The position numbers and the translations under genes were made by a program. Below the pieces are notes generated by a model. It did no database searches. It saw only the letters and a program-made list of their open reading frames with translations, and was not told where the DNA came from. Below are positions 7,986-52,923 of a DNA stretch of 64,000 bases, piece after piece (position 1 is the first letter of the stretch; each line of letters opens with the position of its first letter). The DNA lies in sequence record OR538032.1; one strand, given 5' to 3'.

Positions 7986-8014
7986 TTGACAATAACACAT
8001 CAATACCCGATAAT
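7986..8014 (+). promoter_or_regulatory. class I promoter inside an inverted repeat
   Basis: TTGACA-N17-GATAAT; IR CGGGTATTGA/TCAATACCCG. Confidence 0.7.
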
Positions 8015-8058
8015 AAACACATCAAGACGAGATACGAACTACTTAAAGAGAGAACATT

Positions 8059-8871
8059 ATGACAATCACTAAAGCAGAAATGAAAGCAATCGCACTTGAC
8101 CTAATGAGCGGTAACAATCTAATGCAACGCGATTTGATTGCTGAAGGTTGGTCTTTCGAATTCTCAACTCGCAAAGCTGCACTTGGTGACTGTAACTACC
8201 GTACTAAAGTACTACGTCTTTCTGAAGTGTACTTGAATGCTCGTACTAAAGAAGAGCAAATCAACACAATCACTCACGAAATGGCTCACGCAATCGCGTA
8301 CACTGATTTCAACGAACGTGGTCACGGTGCTATCTGGAAGCGTGTGCATCGTCAACTAGGTGGTACTGCTGAACGTTGTTCAACTGTTTCAAATCCTGAA
8401 GCCGTAGACAGCAAGTACGTTGTTTTCTTCGAAAACGCTCAAGGTGAACTAGAAGTAGTTCAAAAAATGGATCGCATGACTAAGCGTTTTCAACCAGTAC
8501 ACATCAAGTCTCTATACTTGAAAGGTCGCAAAGCTGAAACTGAAGGTCAACTTCGTTGTGTTTCTTCAGCGACGTTCAAAGCTATCAAAGCTGATTTAGA
8601 AGCTAAGAAAGCTGATAACGCTGAAGCATCAAAACCAGTTGCACCTAAAGCTAAGAAAGCTGAAACACCTAAAGCTAAGAAAGTTTCAGCACGCGGTCAA
8701 GCTGCTCGTGACGCAATCGCAGAAATCGTGATGACTACTACTCATAAAGGTTGTAAGTCAGTGTCTTTCGAACAGCGTGGCAAATACAAAGACTGGTACA
8801 TCATGATTGAACTAGAAGCTCACACAATCGAACAGCGTCTAGACACTTTCAAAAAGAAACACAGCCTGTAA
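8059..8871 (+). CDS. SprT-like zinc metalloprotease domain protein
   Basis: LGDCNY...ITHEMAHA...GHGAIWK; K/A/P-rich linker with a 17-bp direct repeat. Confidence 0.8.
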   Translation: MTITKAEMKAIALDLMSGNNLMQRDLIAEGWSFEFSTRKAALGDCNYRTKVLRLSEVYLNARTKEEQINTITHEMAHAIAYTDFNERGHGAIWKRVHRQLGGTAERCSTVSNPEAVDSKYVVFFENAQGELEVVQKMDRMTKRFQPVHIKSLYLKGRKAETEGQLRCVSSATFKAIKADLEAKKADNAEASKPVAPKAKKAETPKAKKVSARGQAARDAIAEIVMTTTHKGCKSVSFEQRGKYKDWYIMIELEAHTIEQRLDTFKKKHSL

Positions 8872-8881
8872 TCTCTCATTT

Positions 8882-8902
8882 AGCCCCGAAAGGGGCTTTT
8901 TT
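8882..8902 (+). terminator. intrinsic terminator
   Basis: AGCCCC-GAAA-GGGGCT-TTTT. Confidence 0.9.
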
Positions 8903-8907
8903 AGGTT

Positions 8908-8975
8908 TGAGCCGGAAAAATTCCGTCTCATCTTAGTAGAATTAGTGCTTTTAGTAATATTAGAAGTATTAGTAA
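8908..8975 (+). repeat. hairpin plus 5x TTAG at 9-bp period (copy 1)
   Basis: TGAGcCGGAA-AAA-TTCCGtCTCA; TTAG at 8933, 8942, 8951, 8960, 8969. Confidence 0.9.
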
Positions 8976-8980
8976 GATTT

Positions 8981-9010
8981 GTTTAACAAACACCTTGACA
9001 GCCGTATAAT
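8981..9010 (+). promoter_or_regulatory. class II promoter
   Basis: G-TTTAAC-N17-TATAAT. Confidence 0.65.
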
Positions 9011-9028
9011 ACACGTCGAGGTGATGAA

Positions 9029-9268
9029 ATGATAACGATATACACAATTCCTAACTGTGACGGTTGTCGTCACGCTATCGCCCTCTGTAAGTTCAAACAC
9101 GTCCCGTATACTGTAATCGAGTTACAGTCACAGACTGACATCGACCAATTACATCAAAAGCTTGGTGGCAATCGCAATATTCGCGTTCCTCTGGCTATGC
9201 ATGGTGACACATACATCGGTCACCTGCCTGAATTGAAGAAATGGGTTGATGAACAGACGTATAAATAA
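9029..9268 (+). CDS. glutaredoxin
   Basis: IYTIPNCDGC active site; VP motif; YIG. Confidence 0.9.
   Translation: MITIYTIPNCDGCRHAIALCKFKHVPYTVIELQSQTDIDQLHQKLGGNRNIRVPLAMHGDTYIGHLPELKKWVDEQTYK
9260..9267 (+). promoter_or_regulatory. T4-type late promoter
   Basis: Exact TATAAATA. Confidence 0.85.
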
Positions 9269-9326
9269 AAGAAATTACGTACATTCTCTCCGCTGAAATG
9301 CGGCAATAAATTAAAGGAATCAAACA

Positions 9327-10223
9327 ATGACTGTATCTAATAGTAACGGTTTACCAGACATTGTTACTGTTCAAAAACGACTATATCCGCTGATCTTCAC
9401 GGAAATCGTTTCTGAACAGCCAACAAAGCAACCCGTTGCAACTGCTTACGGCTTTAAAGCTGTACCTGAAGCTGATGACGGCAGCGGCTGGACACAATTT
9501 GGGTTTAGACTTGATCGTTGGTATGCTCAAGTTGAATCTTCAAAAATGAAGACTGAAATCTCTCTTGAAACGCTGCAAGATATGCAAGCACTTGGTGTTA
9601 GTAATTCAGTGATCGTAGACTCACTAGCTGACCAAATTGCTGATGAAATCAATACGTCGATTATCGGTGCGTTGAATAGCATTTCAACTGTTGGTGCTGC
9701 ACTAACTCTGACGGGTAATACTGATTTTGAAAAAGGTCAAGATCTTTATACGAAAGTACACCTAGCAGCGTCTGAAATTGAAAAAACAACTGGTTGTAAA
9801 GGCACATATGTCGTTGCGGGCGGTAAATGTTTCGGTTATTTGACTGGTTGTGGTGTTGTACAGCGAGTTGGCGAATCGGACGTTTACAAAGCATGGTCTG
9901 GTTTATACATCGTACACGACAAATACGCAACAAGCGATTACGTGACTGTAGGTGTTAAGAAAGACATGGGTGATTATGAAATCTCAAGTCTAGTATTCAG
10001 CCCGTATCAATTCGACCAAGCGAATGACGGTGCGATTGCTTATCAATACAAGGGCACTGACCCGAAATCATTCCACCCTGTGTATGGTGTTATTGCTCGT
10101 TACGCACTAACTGTTCCGCCACTAGAAGACAATCAGACTGGTGCAGTTGAGATTGATTGGTCGAACTTAGGTGCGCTTGCTAATAGCTCAAAGCTTTCAT
10201 ACACATACGCAGTAACAGTATAA
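9327..10223 (+). CDS. 24: gp23/gp24-family capsid protein, probably head vertex gp24
   Basis: Segments resembling gp23/24 (IVSEQPTKQP; ISLETLQDMQAL; LADQIADEIN); late promoter. Confidence 0.7.
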   Translation: MTVSNSNGLPDIVTVQKRLYPLIFTEIVSEQPTKQPVATAYGFKAVPEADDGSGWTQFGFRLDRWYAQVESSKMKTEISLETLQDMQALGVSNSVIVDSLADQIADEINTSIIGALNSISTVGAALTLTGNTDFEKGQDLYTKVHLAASEIEKTTGCKGTYVVAGGKCFGYLTGCGVVQRVGESDVYKAWSGLYIVHDKYATSDYVTVGVKKDMGDYEISSLVFSPYQFDQANDGAIAYQYKGTDPKSFHPVYGVIARYALTVPPLEDNQTGAVEIDWSNLGALANSSKLSYTYAVTV

Positions 10224-51685: not shown

Positions 51686-52234
51686 ATGGCATTTATGAAA
51701 AAAGAGAAAGACGCAAAAGACATTACCGAAGCAGATATGCAGTACGCAATTGCAGTACAAAGCGTATGGATTCACAAACGCTACACAGCGATTATTCCAA
51801 ACTGTTACACCAAATGGGATAATGAAGCTGATCTGTTTGCTATTCGTCCAAGTGGTCTTTGTGATGAGATTGAAATCAAAGTATCCAAAGCTGATTTTCG
51901 AATTGATGAGCAAAAATCAGTAAAGGTCATCGACGAAAGTACACCAAATCTACGATGGCATCGTTACGAAGACGTTCCAAAACGCACAGCATTGCAAGAT
52001 GGTAAAATGTCGAACTACTTCTGGTATGCATTCCCTAAAGGGCTTGTAGACCACTCTGAAGTCCCAGAATGGGCTGGTATAATCGAAGTGGATGGATTTC
52101 TGAACGCCAGAGAAGTAAGAATGCCAAAACGTCTGCATGGTGGCAAGATGACAATCGAAGAGCAACTAAAACAAATCAAGAAACTTGGCTATCGCTTCTG
52201 GAATCTGGTTAAAAAGAACAAAAAGGAACAGTGA
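51686..52234 (+). CDS. PD-(D/E)XK-fold protein, MmcB-like
   Basis: EADLFAI...EIEIKVSKADF..D; NYFWYAFP. Confidence 0.6.
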   Translation: MAFMKKEKDAKDITEADMQYAIAVQSVWIHKRYTAIIPNCYTKWDNEADLFAIRPSGLCDEIEIKVSKADFRIDEQKSVKVIDESTPNLRWHRYEDVPKRTALQDGKMSNYFWYAFPKGLVDHSEVPEWAGIIEVDGFLNAREVRMPKRLHGGKMTIEEQLKQIKKLGYRFWNLVKKNKKEQ

Positions 52235-52306
52235 GGCGGAAAAATTCCGCATCATCTTAGTAGAATTAGTAGTTTTAGTGAAGTTAGGGATATTAGTAGT
52301 ATTAGG
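52232..52306 (+). repeat. hairpin plus 6x TTAG at 9-bp period (copy 2)
   Basis: TGAgGCGGAA-AAA-TTCCGCaTCA; TTAG at 52257, 52266, 52275, 52284, 52293, 52302. Confidence 0.9.
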
Positions 52307-52332
52307 AGACTGTCAATGACTTGAAAAAGTTG

Positions 52333-52361
52333 TTGACAGTCTCCTTTTTTGATCGTACTAT
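52333..52361 (+). promoter_or_regulatory. sigma70-type promoter in the 3' arm of a 12-bp inverted repeat
   Basis: TTGACA-N17-TACTAT; IR GGAGACTGTCAA/TTGACAGTCTCC followed by T6. Confidence 0.7.
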
Positions 52362-52386
52362 ACAGTCCTTGAAACAAATTATGTGA

Positions 52387-52923
52387 GTGAAGACTATGAA
52401 CTTGAGTGAACGTGAAGAAGAGCTAAAAGCATTAGCGATTGACCATGTGTGTGACGATGAAGTTGCTGTCACCGTTTCATGCGCTGGTATGAGTAATTAC
52501 TACACTGTTTGCCCGTCAGAGTTCAAAGACTTTTTGGACAACCATGAGGGAACATCTTATGTAGCATTTGAATGGCACAACATCCCAGATGATTTACAAG
52601 ATGAAGAACTAGACTTCGATGGTCTACTTGCTTGGTTTAATCTAGATGAACATGAGCGTGAAATCTGCGAAGCATTGTATGATAATAACGTTTGTATGTC
52701 ATACGAAGATGCAGCCGAGAAAGTCAGTGACTGTTGGGTATTTGAAGGCACACGCGAAGACTATGCAAGACATGTAACGTCTGAATTAATGGGTATTCGC
52801 TTAGAAGATATGCCTGTCATTGTAAGCAGCAACATCAACTGGGGTGATGTATTCATCGACCTTGACGCAGAGGGTAGTATCTACGAGATTGGTCGCGACA
52901 AATACTTAACAGTACACGGTTAA
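52387..52923 (+). CDS. ArdA-like antirestriction (DNA mimic) protein
   Basis: Very acidic; EDYARHV...MP..VSSNINW..VFIDL resembles the ArdA C-terminus. Confidence 0.6.
   Translation: MKTMNLSEREEELKALAIDHVCDDEVAVTVSCAGMSNYYTVCPSEFKDFLDNHEGTSYVAFEWHNIPDDLQDEELDFDGLLAWFNLDEHEREICEALYDNNVCMSYEDAAEKVSDCWVFEGTREDYARHVTSELMGIRLEDMPVIVSSNINWGDVFIDLDAEGSIYEIGRDKYLTVHG

Follow-up and report, generated by a model that had tools for sequence, protein, structure and literature searches.

The stretch of DNA analysed here (hereafter, the window) comprises 64,000 nucleotides (nt) of Vibrio phage PG216 (OR538032.1), a KVP40-type T4-like phage. Positions 8000-10000 and 51800-52800 of the window are 100% and 97.3% identical, respectively, to KVP40, a T4-related myovirus (Straboviridae, Schizotequatrovirus) with a genome of 244,834 base pairs (bp), and the window as a whole corresponds approximately to KVP40 coordinates 26,980-90,979. 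Upstream of nrdH, and again downstream of the counterpart of KVP40 open reading frame (ORF) 0135, the window carries a non-coding element of 80-110 bases, which is the subject of this work. The element consists of a 9-bp hairpin, the trinucleotide ATC and an array of six 9-nt units, each beginning with TTAG (Table 1).

A hairpin and a phased TTAG array present six times per genome

The element is real. Four TTAG boxes at 9-nt spacing are matched five times in the window, counting overlaps, versus zero matches in 100 shuffled sequences; Tandem Repeats Finder reports a period of 9 at both sites; and a profile hidden Markov model of the element retrieves exactly copies 1 and 2 from the window (E-values of 5e-21 and 2e-23, respectively). 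The original prediction, which was made from the window alone, described copy 1 as a hairpin followed by five TTAG boxes, and every coordinate from 8933 to 8969 is as claimed, but the array includes a sixth, degenerate unit (TTTG). The second copy, noted at 52232, is likewise present, complete with its own hairpin and six TTAG units. The two stems differ in sequence yet still pair, and the mismatch is indeed shifted, from C.T at pair 7-21 in copy 1 to G.A at pair 6-22 in copy 2. The predicted order of terminator, element and promoter applies to copy 1, which follows the intrinsic terminator of the SprT-like gene and precedes the nrdH promoter (nrdH ATG at 9029), the -10 and -35 boxes of which are kept in phages VH7D, 6E35.1a and F86. 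This order does not apply to copy 2, where the terminator-like hairpin comes after the element and overlaps the promoter; the first G of the copy 2 hairpin is also the G of the TGA stop codon of the upstream ORF (52232-52234). An ORF directly after copy 2 (52387-52923, + strand; 175-178 amino acids [aa]) is unannotated in the KVP40 RefSeq record, which has a gap at 79,214-79,903, and corresponds to 'KVP40_0136' named in the annotation of phage 1.081.O.

Table 1. Coordinates of the element copies and of adjacent features. Window positions refer to the 64,000-nt stretch of OR538032.1; KVP40 positions are those of the first TTAG
Feature	Sequence	Position	Strand	Remarks
Intrinsic terminator of upstream SprT-like gene	Window	8882..8903	+	AGCCCCGAAAGGGGCT then T run; stem 8882-8897; context, outside the repeat
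Copy 1 hairpin, tGAGcCGGAA-AAA-TTCCGtCTCa	Window	8908..8930	+	Fold -9.5 kcal/mol, z = -3.7
Copy 1 array, six 9-nt units	Window	8933..8986	+	TTAG at 8933, 8942, 8951, 8960, 8969; TTTG at 8978
nrdH sigma-70-type promoter, TTAACA-16-TATAAT	Window	8983..9010	+	11/12 consensus matches; overlaps copy 1 unit 6
Copy 2 hairpin, GAGGCGGAA-AAA-TTCCGCATC	Window	52233..52253	+	Fold -11.4 kcal/mol, z = -5.0
Copy 2 array, six TTAG units	Window	52257..52310	+	52257, 52266, 52275, 52284, 52293, 52302
Terminator-like long hairpin and T run	Window	52304-52351	+	PeSL-type cassette after copy 2
Promoter, TTGACA-17-TACTAT	Window	52333-52361	+	Overlapped by terminator-like hairpin 3' of copy 2
Copy 1	KVP40	35,912	+	SprT-like gene / nrdH
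Copy 2	KVP40	79,236	+	After ORF 0135 (0135/0136 junction), 2.6 kb before rIIA
Copy 3	KVP40	129,683	+	ORFs 0251 / 0252
Copy 4	KVP40	210,026	+	gp12 / wac
Copy 5	KVP40	238,264	-	gp35 / uvsY
Copy 6	KVP40	184,013	-	gp3 / gp1
Island copy	L146	4586-4666	+	Inside ~180-bp insertion
Island copy	L147	3608-3690	-	Inside ~180-bp insertion
Empty sites	L163-L168	about 9038-9042		Six collinear islands without the insertion

The two copies first recognized are only two of six in the genome. A search of the complete KVP40 genome record with a regular expression and nhmmer yields exactly six copies and zero partial ones, all co-oriented with the flanking genes, even though copies 5 and 6 lie on the minus strand. 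Junction-by-junction comparison of KVP40, VH7D and 6E35.1a places the six copies of the latter two phages at the same gene junctions as in KVP40, despite identities of 83% over the query region (VH7D) and ~74% to the query across a 2-kb region around copy 1 (6E35.1a). The wider spread was assessed by blastn, which locates the element at approximately six places per genome in most of 52 Vibrio phage records, among them Mylasvirus nt-1, F86 and 1.081.O, and gives no noteworthy match outside these records. Phages nt-1, CZ01 and QD01, the latter two isolated on Vibrio natriegens Vmax, have the same six elements. Thus, further copies and conservation among relatives, on which the original prediction had been staked, are both evident: the genomes of about 50 related phages hold six copies each at conserved positions, and a bacterial island has one more (see below). 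Between KVP40 and 6E35.1a, the core of the element is 85% identical, whereas the flanks (150 nt on each side) are only 57% and 70% identical. Within a genome, the copies resemble one another: for instance, every one of the six VH7D copies has TAGTA as unit 1, versus TAGAA in four of the KVP40 copies, and a stem of the CCC/GGG type is found in copy 6 of KVP40 and in copies 2 and 6 of VH7D. Such concerted evolution of the six copies implies gene conversion between dispersed 80-bp repeats.

Anatomical statistics were derived from 25 distinct copies, aligned without gaps, with five full units per copy (125 units, 500 box positions) used for the per-position statistics of the array. The consensus is GAGGCGGAA-AAA-TTCCGYMTC-ATC-(TTAG D R N N N)x6. 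The TTAG letters are kept at 499 of the 500 box positions and unit position 6 is a purine in all 125 units, whereas the other spacer letters vary at a constant 9-nt spacing, in line with the original description. The early impression that the + strand is almost devoid of C is borne out as well, C accounting for 1.9% of spacer letters versus 24% for G (P ~4e-12 in KVP40 alone); KVP40 has five C-free runs of 45 nt or longer, and each of them belongs to an array. In the hairpin, 88% of cells are paired across the 25 copies. Stem pairs 9-19 and 10-18 swap GC and CG jointly (CGG/CCG versus CCC/GGG, with CTC/GGG including a U.G pair in F86), and at pair 7-21, GC and GU are found in 11 copies each. 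The covariation score of the stem was reached by none of 500 shuffles and drops when the register is slid; the loop varies (AAA, TTA, A7) while the stem is kept. In most copies, an AGCG-N1-2-AGCG box (GCGAAGC, GCGCAGC, GCGTCAGC or GCGTTAGC) is located 12-15 nt upstream; AGCGAAGCG occurs five times in KVP40, three of them at elements.

With DNA folding parameters, the hairpin folds and the array remains open as single-stranded DNA (ssDNA). As RNA, the array is predicted to fold back into a helix (-21 kcal/mol, z of about -4.4 to -5), but selection for this structure can be rejected, given that pairing amounts to 84.2% versus 83.9% in shuffles and covariation is absent; the predicted helix arises because UUAG pairs with UUAG through G.U. 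The element also does not represent a coding mini-gene. Although two frames of the array are open, reading (L-V-x)n or (S-x-I)n, frame 1 contains TAA in copy 1 of both 6E35.1a and F86, TAG codons abound in frame 2, the reading frames on the 5' side disagree between copies and the substitutions do not follow a synonymous pattern. Furthermore, the TTA of the units never varies whereas positions 5, 7 and 8 do, which argues against coding, and the absence of a consistent reading frame across copies agrees with the non-coding status initially assigned. The genome records examined contain no annotation of the element. 'Hypothetical proteins' of 38-39 aa are annotated across it in 6E35.1a (133,814-133,930, - strand; 159,772-159,891, + strand) and at ~64.5 kb in D-series phages; gene prediction was probably misled here by the two frames of the array that are free of stops.

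Transcription-unit borders, duplex stability and spacing

Copies 1, 4, 5 and 6 begin 4-15 nt past a strong intrinsic terminator, and copy 2 similarly lies behind a strong terminator in 6E35.1a and 1.081.O, so that five of the six loci have this arrangement in at least some lineages. The interval from the terminator to the hairpin is devoid of promoter-like sites, and only at copy 2 does a terminator follow the element. Five copies end 0-27 bp ahead of a sigma-70-type -35 box, at a distance that varies and is out of phase; in 6E35.1a and F86, the sixth TTAG of copy 1 runs directly into the -35 box. Four of the five adjacent promoters conform to the class TGTTTA-N17-19-TAnnnT, of which approximately 30 promoter-like sites in KVP40 are not accompanied by the element. 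Sites of this class precede genes for replication, recombination and nucleotide metabolism (dsbA, 45, folE, nadV, 0294, uvsY, gene 1 and nrdH) and may be the middle-type promoter class of KVP40; features of early- and middle-mode transcription reportedly went unidentified in the description of the KVP40 genome.

By duplex stability, the arrays fall into the lowest 0.03-0.3% of 54-bp windows of KVP40, that of copy 1 being within the lowest 0.03%, and are at or near the minimum within 1 kb on either side. The gaps between the six KVP40 sites measure 26-54 kb, and the spacing is more even than that of six random points on a circle (P = 0.006 for the minimum gap and P = 0.003 for the standard deviation). 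Copy 5 immediately precedes the uvsY promoter and has genes 34 and 35 as neighbours; in T4, the uvsY and 34/35 loci are oriF and oriG (PMC3016281).

A copy in a bacterial chromosomal island

A scan of metagenomes uncovered the element in two contigs that are not T4-like, with a nearly identical array and a partly degenerate stem. Genes for a ParA-like protein, a TIR protein of the ThsB type and a type I methyltransferase are found on these contigs. Matches to the ParA protein led to six bacterial chromosomal loci, in which an island of ~17 kb, flanked by a lipid A acyltransferase gene on one side and a split M32 peptidase gene on the other, encodes a large serine recombinase, a helix-turn-helix protein, VapE-like and ParA proteins and variable cargo, such as a Cap4-nuclease together with an SMC-like protein. 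Across the island family, the cargo is of the defence type, the ThsB-TIR and type I restriction-modification genes of the two contigs included. The element resides on a segment of ~180 bp that is present in two islands and missing from six otherwise collinear ones, a clean comparison of filled and empty sites. Its site is a repeat-rich intergenic region between the VapE-like and ParA-like genes, ~1 kb from the ParA-like operon, where the copy is sense-oriented and inside a transcript, without a recognizable promoter. Homology of the insertion to the phages is limited to the hairpin and array; neither terminal inverted repeats nor a clear target duplication were seen around it. No matches to the element were obtained in GTDB species representatives and a plasmid collection.

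Just downstream of the empty site, an island ORF (7544-8515 of L165, - strand) belongs to phrog_15600 and is homologous to KVP40.0294 (158,949-159,764; 28% identity over 225 aa), which is encoded immediately upstream of asiA. Another island ORF, of 77 aa (4513-4746 of L165, + strand), matches the N-terminus of KVP40.0297 (160,413-160,988; phrog_15749). That the island holds both the element and homologues of two phage genes suggests exploitation of the element by mobile elements, which, if true, would bear on phage satellites and phage defence in Vibrio. The KVP40.0294 family was considered as a candidate for the trans-acting factor, but its AlphaFold model is too poor for use (pLDDT 51.6).

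Possible function of the element

The fixed positions in KVP40-type phages, together with the island copy, point to a functional docking site, and judging from its sequence and distribution, the element is almost certainly one. The avoidance of C on one strand, the conserved hairpin that tolerates G.U pairs and the co-orientation with transcription argue for single-strand or direction-dependent reading rather than for a plain duplex site. The constancy of TTAG and the purine, along with the scarcity of C in the spacers, would be unneeded by a duplex-binding site and thus also support strand-specific reading. The same features agree with the early suggestion, drawn from the off-helical 9-nt period, that the array suits ssDNA or a protein filament.

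As to what is docked, we tentatively favour a strand-specific cis-acting site for DNA unwinding and loading at transcription-unit borders, similar to an origin of replication, a role that appears possible although well short of probable. Such an origin-like DNA site is best supported by the combination of its usual position outside both flanking primary transcripts, duplex instability, even spacing, a density of six sites per 245 kb in KVP40, close to the five origins per 169 kb in T4 (PMC3016281), the copy at uvsY and capture by the island. The replication origin put forward in the original prediction remains, on circumstantial evidence, the best single reading, albeit not as an origin of the classical iteron type, because the unit is 9 bp rather than 17-22 bp, an adjoining initiator gene is absent, as are DnaA boxes within 200 bp; the A+T-rich unwinding region typical of that class would be the array itself.

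From the observed anatomy, conservation, strand asymmetry, duplex instability, spacing and context, and island transfer, we infer how melting of the array, a binding factor and replication might be connected. The 54-bp TTAG array, as the easiest-melting DNA of the neighbourhood, would be kept free of incoming RNA polymerase by the upstream terminator, while the promoter 0-27 bp downstream, firing away from it, would drive negative supercoils into the array. Upon opening, the inverted repeat, and perhaps the GCGNAGC-type box too, would form + strand hairpins that fix the edge of the bubble. The C-free + strand would then offer six TTAG boxes, in register every 9 nt, to a single-strand-binding factor of the phage or host that is oligomeric or forms filaments, and the bound factor would admit helicase and primase. 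A more elaborate version, in which the six evenly spaced sites constitute one single-strand code (TTAG recurring at 9-nt intervals on a C-free strand, next to a clamp hairpin) read by an oligomeric protein that opens DNA for replication or replisome loading, with the island having captured a site for amplification by, or sensing of, an infecting phage, strikes us as rather unlikely. If correct, this code would be the first sequence-defined origin set in a T4-like phage.

Several observations weigh against an origin-like role. Copy 3 is located within an operon and lacks a promoter in KVP40, VH7D and 6E35.1a; its unit 5 (TTAGGAGTA) is the Shine-Dalgarno sequence of the next gene, a lipoprotein gene with a start codon that follows the array. 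No initiator-like gene adjoins any copy, and the neighbours of the six loci have nothing in common. There is no DnaA box (TTATCCACA with at most one mismatch) within 200 bp on either side of the six copies, which also sets the element apart from origins of the DnaA-trio class. The extremes of cumulative GC and AT skew coincide with strand switches of transcription (160.5, 189.5, 231.5 and 244 kb), not with the copies. Origins oriF and oriG of T4 have a MotA-dependent promoter ahead of the unwinding element, which operates through an R-loop (PMC3016281), whereas here the unstable tract is upstream of the promoter, outside the definition of the T4 R-loop class. The six island genomes without the element indicate that it is dispensable there, the even spacing is a single observation common to all syntenic genomes, and the number of independent covariation events is small because the copies homogenize within genomes. 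Finally, co-orientation with genes, G.U pairs and C avoidance suit a role at the RNA level equally well.

Comparison with characterized origins reveals partial similarity only. T4 has five origins without a shared motif, only two of which are understood (PMC3016281). Like oriF and oriG, the element is a non-coding module of ~100 bp in which an A+T-rich, easily unwound tract adjoins a promoter, of the phage middle-mode type in T4 and of the sigma-70 type, possibly middle-mode, at five of the six copies; it likewise recurs several times per genome at similar density; unlike the T4 origins, the six sites share one conserved sequence, with a hairpin and phased TTAG boxes in addition. With the iteron arrays of T4 oriE, plasmids and lambda-type phages, it shares evenly spaced short direct repeats in non-coding DNA, fixed spacing and variable filler; by contrast, its units are 9 nt with an invariant 4-nt box (versus 12 or 17-22 bp), there are six loci rather than one, and the asymmetry is of the kind expected for a single strand. 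The 12-nt iterons of oriE occur at one locus and their role in replication was never shown (PMC3016281).

Bacterial oriC regions contain DnaA-trios and a GC-rich cluster bounding the AT-rich tract, along with the outward gidA promoter. The C-free strand of the array, in which 72% of triplets in the TAG frame have a central A, the GC-rich boundary and the neighbouring promoter transcribing away all resemble the oriC unwinding region; besides the missing DnaA box, the differences are the reversed order of GC element and triplets and a period of 9 instead of 3. Given that the origins of T4-like phages are poorly defined, one conserved element in six copies provides a handle that can be mutated and a bait for the binding factor. 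Plasmids bearing T4 origins replicate upon T4 infection (PMC3016281).

The next candidate, which we consider unlikely but worth serious attention, is a cis-acting element at the RNA level: the hairpin would nucleate, and the C-free (UUAGNNNNN)6 tract would bind, an RNA-binding protein as a ring or cooperatively, thereby controlling translation, processing or stability at operon borders, and the scarcity of C would additionally keep Rho off the untranslated stretch. The six copies and the island copy are all sense-oriented, the hairpin tolerates G.U, equivalent to A.C on the opposite strand, and avoidance affects C and spares G. Moreover, copy 3, with its Shine-Dalgarno unit, and the island copy are inside transcripts, and copy 2 of KVP40 is within a 3' untranslated region ahead of a terminator. 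However, five of the six loci are positioned between a terminator and the next promoter in some lineages, that is, outside both primary transcripts, and no promoter of their own was seen; Rfam 15 yields no hit at gathering score in the window and only chance-level matches at E-values up to 10, the array fold-back does not covary, and the even genomic spacing is left unexplained.

Precedents for RNA-level recognition are HutP, TRAP and the T4 gene 32 leader, in which a nucleation structure or spaced (U)UAG triplets on unstructured RNA are bound by a ring-forming or cooperative protein. Spaced UAG triplets are a common feature and six boxes would suit a hexamer; the spacers, however, measure 4 nt (HutP) and 2-3 nt (TRAP) versus 5-6 nt here, and the operators of those proteins are part of leaders transcribed from a promoter upstream, whereas most copies of the element are behind terminators. 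The small RNA decoy envisaged in the original prediction is the weakest of its proposals, given the lack of an own promoter and the strong terminator that immediately precedes the element at five of the six loci in at least some lineages, and without an own promoter and, except at copy 2, a terminator, the element does not qualify as an independent small-RNA gene.

A promoter module, in which a duplex-binding regulator coating the six boxes, or a supercoil-sensitive melting tract, tunes or insulates the adjacent promoter, is in our view doubtful. It would account for the fixed orientation relative to the promoter, for the five copies that end shortly before a -35 box, including the abutting copy 1 of 6E35.1a and F86, and for the four promoters of the TGTTTA class. 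It is difficult to reconcile with a -35 distance that ranges from 0 to 27 bp out of phase, with the ~30 KVP40 sites of the same class that lack the element, and with copy 3 and the island copy, which have no recognizable promoter; duplex binding explains neither the hairpin nor the C avoidance on one strand. Ribbon-helix-helix proteins, such as ParG (at parH), omega and MetJ, bind arrays of duplex sites at promoters or centromeres of the genes encoding them. These box arrays are similar in having a short invariant box, a fixed AT-rich spacer, 5-10 repeats and a non-helical period, but show neither strand bias nor a hairpin.

It appears improbable that the arrays bind a ring-shaped or polymerizing protein (a small terminase, condensing or partition-like protein) to organize, cut or package the 245-kb genome. 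The even spacing, the suitability of short boxes at a non-helical period for DNA wrapped on a ring and the proximity of the island copy to the ParA-like operon fit such a site, whereas duplex wrapping needs neither strand asymmetry nor a hairpin, the ParA operon is also present in element-free islands, and T4-type phages package by the headful mechanism without a pac site.

Least probable of all is a functionless selfish or passive repeat, similar to a miniature inverted-repeat transposable element (MITE) or a PeSL-like cassette junction and kept uniform by gene conversion: copies do homogenize within genomes, stem types shift between loci and the ~180-bp segment is in two islands and absent from six, but the six positions are fixed over ~26% nucleotide divergence without gains or partial or decayed copies, the core is better conserved than its flanks and under position-specific constraints, terminal inverted repeats and a clear target duplication are lacking, and dispersed 80-bp repeats should be costly in a highly recombinogenic T4-type genome. 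For the first and the last but one of these reasons, assignment to MITE- or REP-like mobile repeats was rejected as well. PeSLs consist of an AT-rich region, -35 and -10 boxes, a Shine-Dalgarno sequence and a stem-loop, are numerous and mark hyperplastic regions and indels (PMC4122927). In these phages, the element likewise recurs between genes and likewise joins a stem-loop to a sigma-70 promoter, and a typical PeSL follows copy 2; it is nevertheless not a PeSL, its order (hairpin, array, promoter) being reversed and its six copies being fixed in position and mostly located beside core genes.

A role as target of DNA modification is not supported either. In relatives, about 350-850 7-deazaguanine modifications per million nucleotides were reported (PMC6884629, PMC10516641), and the corresponding ~170-420 modifications per genome far exceed the ~36-78 G residues in six arrays; furthermore, DpdA2, the phage 7-deazaguanine transglycosylase, also modifies plasmids without arrays. 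A full-text literature search returned no published description of the element, but the original KVP40 genome description was outside that search and might contain an earlier mention. The architecture itself is unusual, joining a hairpin of conserved structure to six tetranucleotide boxes in a strict 9-nt register on a C-free strand, and implies a mode of recognition that is undescribed for phage regulatory DNA or RNA in the literature searched.

Patterns specific to the element match only KVP40 and VH7D in IMG/VR, and generic scans of this database for TTAG at period 9 return just tandem-repeat noise from unrelated and giant viruses, the generic patterns being swamped by giant-virus contigs with 9-mer tandem repeats. 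An AT-rich contig of an unrelated phage (L150, 12,154-12,197, - strand) has TCATC followed by TTAGT-type boxes at spacings of 9, 9, 7 and 9 without a hairpin (nhmmer E-value of 9e-6), a weak and uninformative match that may be due to chance or reflect a distant relative. A perfect tandem repeat, (TTAGTTCCG) x4.5, in coding DNA of 6E35.1a (224,102-224,141, + strand) fits the same TTAG-period-9 pattern and is unrelated to the element.

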